Source of the DNA: Bugula neritina
Taxonomy: Eukaryota; Animalia; Bryozoa
Reading direction: 5' to 3'
DNA length: 64,000 nt
Assembly (NCBI GenBank): GCA_964035545.1
Contig: OZ037769.1
Span: forward strand, 4,073,929-4,137,928
Positions within the stretch are counted from its first letter, which is position 1, and every line of letters begins with the position of its first letter. The translations under genes were made by a program, and so were the position numbers. Shown piece after piece: positions 7,401 through 40,325 of this stretch. Under the pieces are notes generated by a model. It was given only the letters and a program-made list of their open reading frames with translations. It did not search any database and was not told the DNA's origin.

Positions 7401-9530
7401 TACAGATAGATAAATAGATAGATAGAATACCAGGTAGTTAGAGAAATAGATAAAATACATATATAATACATAATACTAGACAGATATGTATAGAATATAG
7501 ATAGATATATATATATAGAATACAAAAAAGCCAACATCCCAAAGTGACAGTCTTTTTTTAGAAAAAATGTTATAATTTGACCAGCAATACAACACTCAAC
7601 ACCCTCACAGTTGCAAACACTATAGCTTGATGATAATGCTATAAAATAACCTTACTCACTACTTAAATGCTATTTTTAACATTACATGAGTTTTTTCTGC
7701 TTAAAAAACAAAAATAAAATAATTTTTAAACAGTGTATCCATTTATTAGTTAATTAATTTGCAAACAGTGTATCCAATTATTAGTAATTCGAAAAAAGAA
7801 ACTGCCTAAAAAGGAAACAACTCCTGTTGATCATTAAAAATAGATTTGGTAAAAGTTAGCTACATATATTCAGTCATGGTGTTGTATTTGAAAATGCAAC
7901 TTAAAAATGATGAATGGCACCGGAGAGTGAATAATAAAGTATGGTATTGACAATAACACAATATATAATATAAAATATAGTATTGCTATGAGAATCATAA
8001 CTACAACAAAGATGATTATAGAACACAGCCTTGAGTATAGAGAACAAAAACCAACCTCCTTGCTGGAGAATACGAGATGAAGCAGTAGGATGGGAAAGTA
8101 CTTGCGGACTCATACCAATCTCAATGGGGGCTGATAGCTCAGCTGACGTGCCTACTGTCTGTTAATAGAAAACTGTCCACTATTTCACTGTATTTTTGAC
8201 ACCGGAAATGTCAACTTTAATTAAAGTAAAGCTGAGGCATAAATTAAAATTTTACCACTATAATATCCAGGTATTTAATCTATAAAAGAAAACTATATGA
8301 AACTTGAACGGTATATCAATAGATATGCATATGCATATACACACCCTAGTTGACTTTACAGCTGTACTCGAGGCCAGTGGAAGTCTTCGCATAGTATCCG
8401 TGTGAGAATAAGACGGTTTTATCACATTTATCTTAATATTATTATTTTCAAGCTGAAATAAAAAACATCAATAAATAAAATAAAGGCAAACATTTAAGTT
8501 ACTTGAAAAAGAAAATTACAAGTGCTGATGTATAAAATATGAATATGCAAGCTTTTCTTTTAAATTTTCAACTTTCATTAATTATAAACAATACACTTAA
8601 AACATCTCAATTAATTTGGTTATATTTCTCTACTTGGTTTTCAAAAGATGCTTTATGTAACCAAAATTTTCAAAAATGTTGGTAGAACTCCAAATAAAAA
8701 ATTTAAATGTTTCTTGTACATATCCTAAAAACTAAATTGTTTGTCTGAACCAAAATTTGATATTTAAAAGATGTATCACCTCATGACTTGGTAGAAAAAT
8801 TCCACTTTCACCATTGAGAAACACCTGGCAACCAGTCAAACACCTTGCATCTACTTGCATTGCAGTGTCAGGTGTAGGAGACTGTCGTAGATTCGTAACT
8901 CCAGAGCTAGAAACCAGCGAATCTGTTCCAACTGAGCTCTGTTTAGAGCAGGCAGAAAGAAGAGTGCTGGCTGAGCTTGAAATAGCCGAACTACTTTTTG
9001 AAACCAAACTAATTCCACTAGAAAGATTGTGAGATGACACAGAAGTTTGACGATTTGTAGATGAAAAAGTTTGAAAACTTGTAGAAGTAGAATTTTTATA
9101 TCTCGACGGCAAAGGAACAACTATTATTTGAGGATCTGAGTGATTGAGATGAGTAGAAGTCACAAGACCAGGGCGATGAGTCACATTACCAGGGCGAGGT
9201 TTAGCTGGAGCAATGGTTGTAGTTTTGGGAAGAATGACAAAATCTGGTAGATTTGAACTTGGCACAGAAGTTGTTGTTGAAGAGTCTGAAGTAGTTGGAT
9301 TATTGCTCTAGAAATAAACATGTGAATATTTTTATAGAAAATTACAAAGGATCACCAAAATCTAAAAGCTTTTTGACATTTTACATTCTTGTATTTGCTG
9401 TGCTACGAGTATTATCACAAAAAAGTGCAGAAGCATTGCTAATGAGGAACTTATATGCATTGTATTATTTTTGTATAAAATATTGACTTACCCTATCAGA
9501 ACCATCATCAAAATATTGTGGTGAGGCCAT
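4466..9530 (-). CDS. ~688-aa protein with a WRKY/FAR1/GCM1-like CCHH zinc finger (MULE transposase-derived DNA-binding domain), Ser/Thr-rich N-terminus and basic NLS; exons 9492-9530, 8780-9307, 8345-8452, 8056-8158, 7155-7264, 6820-7017, 6321-6436, 5685-5948, 5409-5555, 5201-5265, 4466-4854
   Basis: Eleven exons with canonical splice sites and matching phases form one ORF: MASPQYFDDGSDR...EWLQQLEHISQVRYRVWKTY...VDFRCHMN-x-KSCDCPSML...RFRYTHNH...VKEKILECYEKG...NRGLCPD...LWKQFSKDRFG...KRKRGG...stop at 4466. Zn-ligand spacing is C-x17-C-x35-H-x-H. Confidence 0.78.
7267..7522. repeat. (TAGA)n/TAGAATA-rich degenerate satellite in an intron
   Basis: Repeated tagata / tatagaata units; the source of the YLSI-rich spurious ORFs 7140..7460 and 7174..7401. 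Confidence 0.7.
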
Positions 9531-12286: not shown

Positions 12287-15200
12287 ATGGAAGTACTTTG
12301 GGCTCAGTATAAGAAATTATCTGGGATCCTGGCATGTCGTGTGAAGCTTGTATTCGGATGTTCTCTTTCGGTATGTCAAACTGAACATATAAACAATCTT
12401 ATAGAGTTCTTGCTTATACACACAAGTTCAGTTTATGAAATTGGAAAAACCTAAAGTTTTATGATATTCTCTTTATGTTGTATACAGTATTTTATTTACA
12501 ATATATTTGTTTTTACAGGCTCTTATTATTGGCTATGTTATATCACTGATGGGTGAGTTTTTCATTTGTTCATTATTTACACCATTTATTTGTTATAAGT
12601 CACAACACTTTAAATATGCATGATGTGACACATAATTCTATTTTGATAGGTATTATGCCAGGAGAGTATAGACTGGAAACTGAGAGATGTATGGAGGATT
12701 TAGGGTGTTTCTCTATATACGGCAACTACACTCTACGACCTTTTAACCTTCTTCCGCAGTACAGAGACGTTGTTGATACTAGATTTATCCTCTATAACTC
12801 TGATTACACGTATAGCGAAAGTTCCTACAATGATATTCAAACTATAATCAAAGAGCTGCATTCTGGTAAAGGACTTGTAATAGTTATACATGGTTGGATT
12901 TCCTCGAGACATGATGCAGATATACAGGTATGTTTTAGTTGTTATTACAGTAGCTGTTAGTGTTTTTTTGTTCCTGTACTGGTTAGTGTGTTATGTCATG
13001 TGTTGTTTGTGTTGTTTGCTTGTAGATAAATGAATAGCTTCAGTTTTTAGCCGGTGATTATTCACTCAGGTAGGAGGCTAGCTGCAAACCCCCCTCATTC
13101 AGCTGTGAATATGTTGTAGCTAATTTTTGTCATTCAATTTTAAGCTCATACAGTAACCAAAATTAATTTTCATGGCATTTCTATATAATTAAAAATTTAT
13201 AAATGTAATTAGCTGATATCCAAAATGAATCAATTATAATATATTTTAATTAGATGCTCTAAGACAATAAAAATAATGCCCTGGTAGTTAGGTTTAGACT
13301 ACTGCAGCACCAACTGCCTTGTGGGGGGAGGGGGTTGAGCCCCTATCCACTACTATATTACCAGGCCTGATGGTGTAGCAGTGGATAGAATAAGGAATAT
13401 GATTAGTCTTATGTAATCTGCACACATGAAATTACATAACATACATATATGTATGTTATGTACATGCATGTAATGTATGTATACATGTGTATACAATGAT
13501 GTACAATAATATGCTAAGCTGTACGTCACATACATATATGTACATCAAGTCTTTAGTGAATTATTTGTTTCTTCTATGCTATAAAATGCTATAAATATGT
13601 CCCCATATACATTATACATTACTGTTGATTAATTAAATGGATTGTAATGCTGATTGTTTTAGAATTTGGTGAAAACACTGGTAGATGAGAAAGGAGAGGA
13701 GTTAAATGTGATGCTTGTAGAGTGGGAGAGGGGCTCTGTACAGACGTACCCTCAAGCTGCAGCCAATACCAGGGTTGTGGGAGCTGAGATTGCTAGGCTA
13801 CTTCGTCTGGTCCAGGTGATGCTCTATCATATAATATGCAGTGGTTTTTACTTTTAATATCCACTTTATGTTCGGAGTTTTATGTGGCACGCTTGGTATC
13901 AGCCTGAATCGATCATTTATCTTAATATATCTTAGTCAGGTTTGCCTATGTATTAAGGTGAGCTTTTCTATCAGTGACTTGACTATTCGCAGCGCTGTCG
14001 CTGTGAGTCTGGATTGCGATATTACCTCCCCCTGAGTTCTTTATTCAGGTGCTTTTGTTGAAATAAAATAAACAGAAATACATGTTATGGAGACGATGGT
14101 AGCGGTGGTCACCTTTGGTCACTTTTAACCGCTGTGGTCCTGCGCGGGTGGCGGGTCGATTATTTTCATGAAGTAGTTTTGCTACTTTCTAGATGTTGAA
14201 GAAAATGTTATCATTCTCATACTTTTACAGCTCATATCTACCCCAAGTCATTTTGAGACACCCACACTTTCTACTAAATGCTAAAAAACTATCATATAAT
14301 TTTTTTGTTTTGTAGACTAAGATTCTACTAAAAGATGTTCATTTAGTGGGTGTCAGTTTGGGGGCCCACATTTCAGGCACATGCGGATCTCTTCTACCTG
14401 GGATTGGTAGAATTACAGGTACTTATTGACTATTGCTGCTTGTCTAAAGCTCCAGTTTGAAAACTATAATTTGTAGGAACTTAAGTCACTTTTATAGCTA
14501 GCAAATTGTGCAATCTATTTAGATAATTCTGATGGTTTGAGTATACATTGGATATTTATGCACACACACACACACACATGCACACGCACACGCAACTGCT
14601 CAAGCTAGTTTTTGGGTTTTCTTATACATGATAGCTTTTTAAATTAAATTTAAGATATACATAAATATTCGAAACAGACACTAATTTGATATAAACCTCT
14701 GGTTTTATCTGTTTTGTATCTTTTATATTTCTACAGCACTCGATGCTGCTGGGCCTCTTTTTGAGAGTTATCCTCCCTCAATCAGATTGGATCCAACCGA
14801 CGCCCTGTTTGTTGACGCTATACATACGGATGGTGATGATTTCTATAAAGTAGTCATGGCAGAAGGTGGTAAGTGTCTTCTAGGAGCTGACATATTTGAC
14901 AGTTGAAGCAGGTGCTTGACATGTCTGTTTATTTTTACTGGTATACTGACCTCACTTTCAATTTTAGTGAAATGATTTGTAAATTCTAGTCCCTGAAATA
15001 GTGTGGTTCTTTAGTTTTCAAGTTTTAAACAATAAATTTATCAAAGTAATTGTCAAATAACAAAATATATTGAATAGTTGATTTTGTTTTTTTTAGAAAA
15101 TTGGCTTTTCAATCAGGAGTTATCTTTTCTTGATCATAAATTTTATAAACCTCCACAAAGTTTCAAAATTATTGGTATTTATTAGTTTACATCTGGCAGG

Positions 15201-36345: not shown

Positions 36346-39300
36346 TTAGATTTCCCGCAATCTAAATTTCCTGATTTTTTCAATGTGATAAGGGTAGCTG
36401 TCTTGCAGGTCTTGAAAGGCTTGACTTAGAATGACGGCTTGGTAATGAGGCTCTGTTCTTTCTGTCAGCGGAATATCAATCTTGCTGACGTACATTCCAA
36501 CCGGCTGTAGCCTCTCCTCACCTGATCCTGTTTTAACCTGGAGGTGAACGATCCTTCCACAGTCTCCATCTTCTAGCAAACTAGAGCGAATAAAAGTTGT
36601 AGTGATTGCAAAATCTTACACTAATCAAATCTAAAACAAAAGCAACTTAAAAAGAGTGTGTATAAAAGTATTTTTTATAAAAGAGACAAGGTGCCGAAGT
36701 TTAACCGTAATAGCAGCAAGAAGTAATGCTTAACGAAAAAAAGTATCGGCATGCAATTTGAATTTTATAATTTTTAAATTTCACAAATTGAGTTATAAAA
36801 AAACAGCACAATTTATGTAGTCAGTGTTATTTTCTAGTAACAATTATTGCAATGTATAGTGAAAACTCCAAATAAATATATAAGTTATGACAATGTAGTG
36901 CAATAACAAAAGCTGCTCACTCGTTTCCTTCATCTGTTTCTGAAGTGATGATGAAACTGAGGTGTTTTCCATCTTTCACTCTTTCTCTCCCAGATGGTCT
37001 GTGGGCCACTTTTAGCATACCACTCAAGCTTTTATATTTGTTCCGAATAACAACGGGATGGCCAACTTTATAGAGCTCTTCTAGATGGTTCAGTGACTTA
37101 ATTTTGTAAATATTTTCACCCGCACTGTCTTGGACGGTTGCCAAGAGCATCTGCAGCCGTTCAGCATCACTATACTCAATCGGTAGCAAAGCGATATCGT
37201 TCAGGAACATGTGGTGGCACGTACCATCTTGCAGTTGAGGACACAACCCTGCTGGGCATTTGATATCCTCTGATTGGGGCTGAAAGTATTTTTGCCTACA
37301 ACCAACGAGCAGTGGCAGCTTTATATCTGCAGGAATAAGTGTTCCCAGCTCATCTTGCGTTTGTTCAGGTACGCTCCTATGAGTCTTTTCTGAAACCTTG
37401 AGAAAGTATTCATTTTTGCTGCTACTAGCCATGATCTCTTCACGAATTCTTGATATTCTAGCTTCAGGCTCAATTTTCTTTTCCTCATCTCGTCTATCTC
37501 CATTCGCCTCATTGCTGCTGCCATAGTGGTCACACTGGATGCTGGCAACTGGTTCTGCTTGAATTTCTCGATCTGGCTCAATGTGTACAATATTGTTGTT
37601 CCATCGCCAAGTGTCGTCAGCCTGTTTAGCTCTTTTAAACTGGTTTGATGATAAAATCAAATGAGCGGGTACCACTGCAAAAATAACTCCATGCTCATGA
37701 GGGTTTTCTTGATTTCTTACAACCCTTGATGATACAAGAAGCTCACAAGTTGCTTGTCTTTCAACTTTCCACTCACATGAGTTTTTTTTCGGCACTTTGA
37801 CATAGATTTTGAGACTTTGGTCGACCTGCTTTATAGGGCCATCTGTATTCTGGGTACAAAAATTGAAGTGGGAGAACTCAGGATGAGTCTCCTCTAGCTC
37901 CTTTTTCAGCAGGTTTAACTGAGACTGGAAAGAGCTAGCATTAGGTCCTAAAACTAGGATATCTCTCCAATTATCAGACGCTTGAGTTATGATGGCTGAG
38001 GGGTCCAAATCCAGGCAAACACTAAAGGTGAATCATACACCATGTAAAAGCAAATAATGGCTTATGCTATCCAATCATACTACTATTTTTTATAGGTTGC
38101 TTTATGCAGATATAAAAAGTCAAATTTTAAAGCACAGTTTAAAACATCAAACTTGAATTTTATTCTATTTGAGTAATAGTGTCAAGTTTTTTTACAGGGT
38201 TGCTTTGATTTAATTGTTTGTAGAGCTTAAATTTTTTTAAACTGAGTTCAGAACCAGCCATTAGATATAAATCGTTACCATAGCTACTAATTGAGTTAAA
38301 ATTTTGTTACACTGTGCACATTTTGTTGCCTTAAACGTTACTAGTTTAAAATTTCTTAATACTTTTAGCAATTATTTATTACAACCAGAACATAAAAGCA
38401 ACTGTTTATTTAATATTCGTTTTAGGAGTTGCTTTTTCTCTACATATTTTGCTTTGTAAATGGATTTTATTTGAATTTTGATTTCCTGTAAATATTTGTG
38501 ATATCAATTATATTGGCGTTAAATTTATTTAAATCTAAAGCAACTGATTTACTGTTAGATTTGCAAACATTCGCGGACACAGTATAAATAGTAAGCGCAG
38601 CACTACCTGTCAATTTTTTCAAGCAGTACTTGAGGAAGTCCTGTGCATGCGTTTGAGGAGTTATCTTCTTTTGTAAAAGTCGCATAATCTCCTGATTCAC
38701 TATCTTTATCGCTGCTATCGCTGTAGTAAGGAAGAAAATGTTTCTTTTTTTCTGGAACATTCGTCTGATGCTCTTTTTCTTCTTTTGCTATAAAATAAGA
38801 ACCCAAAAGATATTAAATGCATATATTATATTGCTCTTCGTTGCAAATAATAAAAAAATAAAAAGCTAAATATTCATCCTATAGATAAATGAAAGCATAG
38901 CCTATACTAGGACTGTCCAACAGAAGGCCTTAGGGTCAGATGTATTTCCCAGCCTAGGTTTATGTGGCTCTCAAAGGCATAACATTACTTTCGATACATA
39001 GATTGTAACTGGTTGTATGTTGCCCATTATAAATAACTATTGACCCCATTAACTTCATATTTATGTTTAGGTGACATACGTCAGCAGGCATGACTCGTTT
39101 ACCTTGTGCTGACTATTAGATTTGTGGTCAGGTCATTGTGGTCGTGGTGGCTGTCATTCTTGCCCTACATCTGCCGGGCTGGGTTGGTATCCTGAGGCTA
39201 CCCAGTGAATGTTTACTATGTTTTGAGACACAATCATTGTGGTATTTTTTTAGGGACAATAGTTGTTTATGCAATTTGTTTTTGCCTGGTACAGTAACAA

Positions 39301-40325
39301 CAACCAGAGTATATAGACACTTAACAAACTCAATACAATCAGCTGGCAGCACTCTTTAACAAAACTGTAATTACTATTTTTTCTAATCTATTGTTTTGAC
39401 AATATTATTTACTGGCACTGTCTATGAAGGACCCAAGAGGTTGGTTATTTTTATTCATATTATTGTTTGAATTATTATTTTATAATAAATTTACTTTTAT
39501 GGTTTTTATGAGCATTACTTTAATATTTTTAACTACATTTATATGCATGCAATAATTTATATTATGCTTTTTGCTTTTCTTATTTAGTTTTTACCAGAAA
39601 GTTTATCAACAAGTTTGACACCAAGTATAACCTACAATAAACTTCTGCGTTTGAAAATCCTGGTTTATTCATACGAGGCCAATAACATAGATGAATTATA
39701 AGAATGAAAAACTAACTTTCAAATGTCTTGTTTATACACATGCTACAAAATATGCAGCCCAGCTGTATTAACAGTTGGACTTCATTGTGTAGTGATTCAT
39801 AGGAATTTGGAATAATGTAATTTGGAAAATTCTGATGCTGTAGCCCCTTCCCCCAGCCCCGCCCAAGCTAAAGTTTACAATATAACCCTCGCCTTTTTTA
39901 GCGGCTCTTGCACTGAAAAGATTGGACACCCCTGATCTATACAATGAACAATGTTGCAGCATGTTAAGTTTCATTGTCATGAATGTCACGTGGATGCTGC
40001 AAACAAAGTATGAAATCAGGCAGCTGGGGAAATTTGGTGTATGTGAAAATTTAATTTATGATGATAGCATGATTTTAGATTTTAGCTATAAAAATTGTTA
40101 CTAGCAGTTACTAATTATGAAGGACATGATATTGTTATTTCATATACCTTTCACTTTGTGAGAAAAAAAGTCAAGTTTTCTCTCTGTTTCAAATTTGGGA
40201 GTTTCTAGTGGCAAGGTTATGGGAGTACTCCGCTGTTTATAAGACTTCTTTTTCTCAATCGGCACCGTTGTTGCACTTTCTCTTCTAGGTTTCTTTATAT
40301 TTTCCATCTCAGATTGCATCAACAT
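36346..40325 (-). CDS. Putative chymotrypsin-fold (clan PA) protease-like protein with a Cys nucleophile motif GDCG, ~564 aa, no signal peptide; exons 40148-40325, 38607-38787, 36921-38021, 36346-36580 (5' end uncertain)
   Basis: Four exons join in frame with GT-AG sites. Motifs appear in triad order: IFAVVPAHLIL (His codon 37661-37663), FLNDIALLPI (Asp 37196-37198), LLEDGDCGRIVH (Cys 36559-36561), followed by PVGMYVS...YQAVILSQAFQDL. The N-terminal ~120 aa is charged and low in complexity. Confidence 0.72.
39900..39935 (-). mobile_element. Remnant end of a hAT (Charlie-like) DNA transposon
   Basis: The minus strand reads CAGGGGTGTCCAATCTTTT, which resembles hAT-Charlie termini; no matching opposite end found. 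Confidence 0.35.

Follow-up and report, generated by a model that had tools for sequence, protein, structure and literature searches.

A predicted cellular clan PA protease of the NAL1 type, with cysteine as putative nucleophile, in the bryozoan Bugula neritina

Chymotrypsin-fold proteases with a cysteine nucleophile have, to our knowledge, been catalogued only from RNA viruses, and literature searches for cellular PA-clan cysteine proteases found no paper on a cellular family. Cellular enzymes of this shape ordinarily have serine at that site. The viral 3C, 2A and NIa (tobacco etch virus, TEV) enzymes, grouped in MEROPS as clan PA(C), share the chymotrypsin fold, a G-x-C-G turn at the nucleophile and a triad of His, Asp or Glu, and Cys. 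FAM111A/B and the HtrA/Deg proteins are intracellular or compartmental trypsin-fold proteases of divergent sequence, all with a Ser nucleophile, and FAM111A reportedly has roles in antiviral restriction. Rice NAL1 (NARROW LEAF 1; PDB 7y77, 8pmg, 8pn2) is an intracellular, trypsin-like serine protease with the triad H234/D291/S385 (PMC12012508). Here we describe a gene of the cheilostome bryozoan Bugula neritina that lies within a 64,000-nucleotide stretch of contig OZ037769.1 (assembly GCA_964035545.1, positions 4,073,929 to 4,137,928; hereafter the window), where it occupies positions 36346-40325 of the minus strand. The evidence supports a clan PA protease that is cellular, resembles NAL1 and has a predicted cysteine nucleophile, the locus being a free-standing member with a Cys3His cluster. 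In full, the gene likely encodes an intracellular clan PA double-barrel protease with a His-Asp-Cys triad that belongs to an undescribed, expanded bryozoan family nearest to NAL1.

The gene consists of four exons with consistent splice phases (1, 2, 2) and, with codons counted exon by exon, encodes a product of approximately 564 residues. Introns 1-3 begin with GT and end with AG throughout, with a pyrimidine tract ahead of each AG. The exons and the residues considered below are as follows, a slash marking each exon boundary.

Exon 1, 40148-40325, minus strand: starts with ATG; 59 codons plus 1 base; donor g/gtatat.
Exon 2, 38607-38787, minus strand: 2 + 177 + 2 bases; splice sites tatag/ca and ag/gtagtg.
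Exon 3, 36921-38021, minus strand: small N-terminal alpha/beta module, first beta-barrel with the His and Asp, start of the second barrel.
Putative catalytic His codon CAT, 37661-37663, minus strand: in A-V-V-P-A-H-L, residue approximately 240.
Cys3-His cluster C-x4-C-x7-C-H-H, 37211-37258, minus strand: four residues ahead of N-D.
Putative catalytic Asp codon GAT, 37196-37198, minus strand: in N-D-I-A-L-L, residue approximately 395.
Exon 4, 36346-36580, minus strand: nucleophile turn, last barrel strands, C-terminal helix, TAA stop.
Putative nucleophile Cys codon TGT, 36559-36561, minus strand: in E-D-G-D-C-G-R-I-V, residue approximately 494.

The frame of exon 1 is open from the ATG and the encoded sequence is charged; no counterpart of this exon was detected in the B. 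neritina genome, and it is the least supported part of the gene. The product of exon 2 is acidic and Ser-rich and closes with an L-P-x-x-L-L-x-x-I-D helix that continues into exon 3. Exon 2 shows 63% conservation upstream of the closest paralogue on contig C8, and full-length proteins of Watersipora show an exon 2-type I/L-P-x-x-L...L-C pattern. No hydrophobic signal peptide was found in the N-terminus (exons 1-2). Within exon 3 a long insert separates the His from the Asp by 154 residues, and L-L-E-D-G-D-C-G-R-I-V stands at the start of exon 4. In 12 of the 12 paralogues examined, intron 3 lies at an identical position and in the same phase; it also coincides with the splice in the GenBank model of a paralogue, P0005. 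An initial annotation, made from the window alone, had read here a spliced open reading frame (ORF) with VVPAHL, NDIALL and EDGDCGRIV in that order, and all three were recovered at the places it gave, as were the charged N-terminus without a signal peptide, the His-Asp gap and the Cys/His cluster.

The fold of the whole domain was modelled on the full-length paralogue P0005 (B. neritina KAF6034933.1, 462 aa, G-D-C-G), the window exons contributing only as rows of their own in the alignment. P0005 and paralogue L008 of the B. neritina assembly share 91% identity, which indicates that the window stems from a Bugula closely akin to the GenBank strain, although perhaps not the same. The AlphaFold2 (AF2) model of P0005 (predicted local distance difference test score, pLDDT, 83.8; predicted template modelling score 0.79) contains two six-stranded beta-barrels, as in clan PA, with the His after a strand, the Asp opening a strand and the Cys in a turn ahead of a strand; past the Cys turn the model has two more strands and then a helix at the C-terminus, an arrangement shared with trypsin. 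A small beta-beta-alpha-beta module stands ahead of the barrels in this model and in that of exon 3 described below. In a 100-row alignment of the family (A3), the window His aligns with His112 and the window Cys with Cys378 of P0005.

When the P0005 model was compared with the PDB by Foldseek, rice NAL1 filled the first 22 places (best E 4e-7), followed by complement factor B, thrombin and Seneca Valley virus 3C. A Foldseek-independent aligner, VIA, gave NAL1 at Z 14.8 (241 aligned residues, root-mean-square deviation, rmsd, 4.0), then HtrA3, DegS, Deg1 and FAM111A at Z 11.5-11.9 (FAM111A 11.6, HtrA3/DegS 11.8-11.9), classical trypsins at approximately 10-11 and hepatitis A virus (HAV) 3C at 10.0. 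There were 105 PDB chains at Z >= 8, and the best 50 of the 105 were all PA-clan proteins. In the VIA aligned ranges, His112 of the model lies one residue off NAL1 H234. ESM Atlas searches led to clusters bearing Nal1_C (one of them in Mollusca), Trypsin_2 and Peptidase_S64. The AF2 model of window exon 3 alone, made from 15 sequences, was poor (pLDDT 57), with a confident part at approximately residues 64-290 that spans the His and the Asp; it matched barrel 1 of DegS (Z 7.4, 82 residues, rmsd 2.9) followed by Deg2, HtrA3 and Deg5 (range Z 7.4-5.9), and PA-clan proteases made up almost all of its top 50 rows, for barrel 1 only. These models indicate that the predicted fold of the family is a PA-clan double barrel (trypsin fold) and that NAL1 is its nearest solved structure, in agreement with the trypsin fold and the Nal1/FAM111-like relationship put forward in the initial annotation.

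NAL1, which matched the family model better than any other solved structure, also resembles the bryozoan protein in being intracellular without a signal peptide and in having a module ahead of the protease domain, the order His-Asp-nucleophile and a C-terminal extension. NAL1 is further marked by an ATP-binding domain and a hexameric cage. The two differ in that the NAL1 nucleophile is Ser385 and that of the window gene is Cys (TGT), although seven sister genes in the same genome have Ser; in that the bryozoan His-Asp insert is approximately 100 residues longer and holds the Cys3His cluster; and in that no similarity between them is detectable in sequence (PDB profile search; Pfam Nal1_C in the B. 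neritina genome). FAM111A/B and HtrA/Deg differ from the bryozoan family in their Ser nucleophile, in lacking the Cys3His insert and any sequence similarity to it, and in their PDZ or PCNA-binding elements, which are absent from the bryozoan protein. The Cys3His cluster is near-invariant in the exon-3 alignment (A1); in the wider family (A3) it is present in approximately half of the members and cleanly deleted in the remainder. It is probably an independently acquired structural zinc knuckle in the loop ahead of the Asp strand.

The B. neritina assembly (216 Mb, 321 contigs) was searched for further members, which yielded exon 3 in at least 14 copies and exon 4 in approximately 21. The nucleophile motifs were G-D-C-G (14), G-H-C-G (1), G-D-S-G (5), G-H-S-G (1) and G-Q-S-G (1), a tally of approximately 15 Cys and seven Ser. 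The G-D-C-G motif, whose conservation among homologues the initial annotation had proposed to check, is shared by most but not all copies: the Cys recurs in approximately 15, and seven have Ser. Identity between paralogues is low (25-30%), showing fast divergence. One exon 4 copy (L024) is without the nucleophile turn and may be broken. Four family genes lie in tandem within approximately 55 kb (C8:8800946-8855301), and two G-D-S-G genes lie approximately 5 kb apart (C6:8740297-8746531).

A word-based protein search returned three exon-like fragments only, and full-length relatives were reached by an exhaustive profile search, which with A1 gave 151 cluster representatives at E <= 0.001. All named relatives are from the cheilostome bryozoans Bugula neritina or Watersipora subatra and are labelled "uncharacterized" or "hypothetical". 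Pfam scans identified C-terminal leucine-rich repeat (LRR) arrays in relatives P0107, P0114, P0122 and P0135 and N-terminal ankyrin arrays in P0055 and P0152. In P0044 (Watersipora subatra XP_067940310.1) a guanylate-binding protein (GBP) GTPase domain (PF02263, E 4e-7) lies upstream of a G-E-S-G protease member. The window copy has no accessory domain and represents the free-standing form. A further relative, P0042 (L016:945-2078, L017, L018; sample SAMN08714533), is a 377-residue G-D-S-G member encoded by a single uninterrupted ORF on metagenome contigs, and may be an intron-less copy or retrogene or a gene of another organism.

A G-x-C-G turn together with the order His-Asp-Cys is the hallmark of viral 3C/2A proteases, and it was considered whether the family is the domesticated descendant of such a cysteine protease, which the host would have acquired from a picorna-like RNA virus and then duplicated. 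Foldseek did retrieve picorna-like polyproteins at E approximately 5e-5, and the picornaviral 2A and hepatitis C virus NS3 proteases carry structural zinc. The closest structures are nevertheless cellular: NAL1 matched approximately 100-fold better than the best viral protein in Foldseek, and in VIA both NAL1 and the HtrA/Deg/FAM111A group stood above HAV 3C. The viral enzymes are cut from polyproteins, whereas the bryozoan proteins are products of a spliced, cellular multigene family with Ser-type sisters. Here the gene has four exons, with a conserved intron inside the domain, Ser-type members are interleaved with Cys-type members on the tree described below, and the fusions (LRR, ankyrin, GBP) and tandem arrays are of host type. 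The Cys3His cluster also lies wholly ahead of the Asp, which would set it apart from the viral zinc sites. Taken together, a viral origin of the domain appears improbable. That the locus itself is a viral polyprotein or virus-derived insertion was rejected, as the gene is spliced and cellular, its intron is common to 12 paralogues and LRR, ankyrin or GBP domains are joined to the protease domain in its relatives.

The predicted triad of a cellular NAL1-like protease is well conserved. The His and Asp are invariant in A1, and in A3 the His column contains H in 89 of 90 rows and the Asp column contains D in all 90. At the nucleophile position the residues are C (15), S (12) and L (1), with the glycines on either side retained. 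The window His, Asp and Cys sit in these conserved columns, and the family shows the clan PA order of His, Asp and nucleophile with a G-x-S/C-G turn.

As TGT is one base from AGT, it was considered whether the Cys might be an artefact, produced by an error in sequencing or assembly or by an inactivating substitution that entered a decaying copy very recently. The initial annotation had named recent substitution and assembly error as a caveat. The same site is Cys in the approximately 15 paralogues noted above, in a second Bugula source (JGI contig L014, likewise G-D-C-G) and in Watersipora proteins. A contig of public run X1 is identical to the window over 36388-37971 except for one base, 37569. 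Contigs of runs X2 and X3 are approximately 93% identical and show no difference at 36559-36561; because they include intron 3 they represent DNA, either from a closely related source or from a second haplotype. These runs come from one study and are available as contigs, not raw reads, and X1 may be the assembly's own sample, so they are taken as supporting evidence only. All frames are open and the splice sites are intact. Identity to the closest paralogue, L002, is 72% for exon 3, where the ratio of nonsynonymous to synonymous change (dN/dS) is 0.30, and 92% for exon 4, where dN/dS is 0.12. The gene is under purifying selection, without decay. Since the family comparison agrees and dN/dS is far below 1, decay and assembly error are refuted, and the probability that the Cys is an artefact is negligible.

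Among the B. neritina paralogues every Cys nucleophile codon is TGY and every Ser codon AGY, a single A/T change apart. A tree was built from the exon 3-equivalent part, N-terminal of the nucleophile, with tips labelled from the neighbouring exon 4. The Cys/Ser label requires five changes on the best tree, well-supported branches force at least two, and one Watersipora Ser protein is placed among three close Cys sisters. Nucleophile switching inside a cellular NAL1-like family is the simplest reading of these data, over viral capture, and the Ser-to-Cys switch suggested at the outset is matched by the presence of both types in the family.

Exchange of the nucleophile normally cripples PA proteases (PMC4576821), and it might be supposed that these proteins are pseudoproteases, in which the trypsin-like shape is kept to serve binding or scaffolding and the Cys is tolerated only because catalysis no longer matters. 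The residue ahead of the nucleophile varies (D, H, E, Q), and the quick divergence of the family would also fit such a role. The near-complete retention of His and Asp, with Cys or Ser in 27 of the 28 nucleophile rows between retained glycines, is instead the pattern of a working triad and not of a relic, and exon 4, which bears the nucleophile, is the most constrained part of the gene. Loss of catalysis thus seems unlikely, although less so than capture from a virus.

Several points weigh against assignment of the gene as an active NAL1-like cysteine protease. Sequence comparison connected the gene with no protease family: a Pfam scan of each window exon gave no match even at E <= 10, trypsin (PF00089/PF13365) included; a scan of 19 relatives (E <= 0.1) detected no protease family, only LRR, ankyrin and GBP in fusions; a PDB sequence search with the exon and with profiles A1 and A3 returned nothing meaningful; and Pfam Nal1_C (PF25819) had no match in the B. 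neritina genome, a weak search in which 14 control genomes were equally silent. P0005, the source of the whole-domain fold, is only approximately 25% identical to the window copy in exon 3 and approximately 40% in exon 4. The activity of characterised PA proteases usually falls by more than 10^4-fold when Ser and Cys are exchanged (PMC4576821), and because of this cost some copies could be weak or inactive.

Directed evolution of TEV protease has overcome an approximately 10^4-fold loss, a few mutations being enough for a PA protease to tolerate either nucleophile (PMC4576821). By analogy, the bryozoan family may have reached such a nucleophile-permissive state naturally. A more speculative extension, which we hold tentatively and consider less probable than the protease assignment itself, is that Cys and Ser versions are both active and flip by one A/T change, with the protease domain serving as the cutting module of intracellular sensors (LRR-, ankyrin- and GBP-fused in relatives) and the present gene as a free-standing, zinc-stabilised effector. 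If true, the family would provide a present-day case of the Cys bridge that had been postulated between serine codon types in proteases.

In the proposed mechanism the predicted triad would comprise approximately H240, D395 and C494, the thiol being placed in the G-D-C-G turn at the site of Ser195 in trypsin. His240, oriented by Asp395, would act as general base and activate the Cys494 thiol for attack on the scissile carbonyl, giving a thioester that is then hydrolysed, as in the 3C and TEV proteases. The chemistry would thus probably be the same as that of the viral 3C/2A/TEV enzymes. The window copy is predicted to have a disordered, charged N-terminus, a small alpha/beta module, the long His-Asp insert and the Cys3His cluster with a putative structural zinc. 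The family resembles intracellular sensor-effectors because of its LRR, ankyrin and GBP fusions, lineage-specific expansion and fast divergence; a role in innate immunity or stress signalling, which the initial annotation had raised, may be suggested by inference only.

An animal gene family with a predicted His-Asp-Cys triad, and with Ser sisters at short evolutionary distance, offers a natural system for studying how an enzyme outlives a change of its catalytic atom. It also extends NAL1-like proteases from plants to animals. The way in which the family has expanded, its tandem arrays and its fusions to sensor domains suggest that intracellular defence in invertebrates has a proteolytic branch that is so far unexplored.

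Apart from this gene, the window contains long open frames only at 8735-9265 (minus strand, 177 aa) and 12553-12957 (plus strand, 135 aa), neither of which had a Pfam match. In intron 2, approximately 285-291 bases at 38023-38315 are skipped in contigs of X1 (minor form), X2 and X3. This skip abuts the exon 3 acceptor and has the appearance of an indel polymorphism within the intron or of a stretch that has been replaced. No inverted repeats were found in intron 1, which contains an interspersed repeat of approximately 690 bp (39002-39688) without terminal inverted repeats. This repeat has at least 50 copies in the genome at 71-94% identity (504 candidates at first look) and very high contig depth in X1, X2 and X3.

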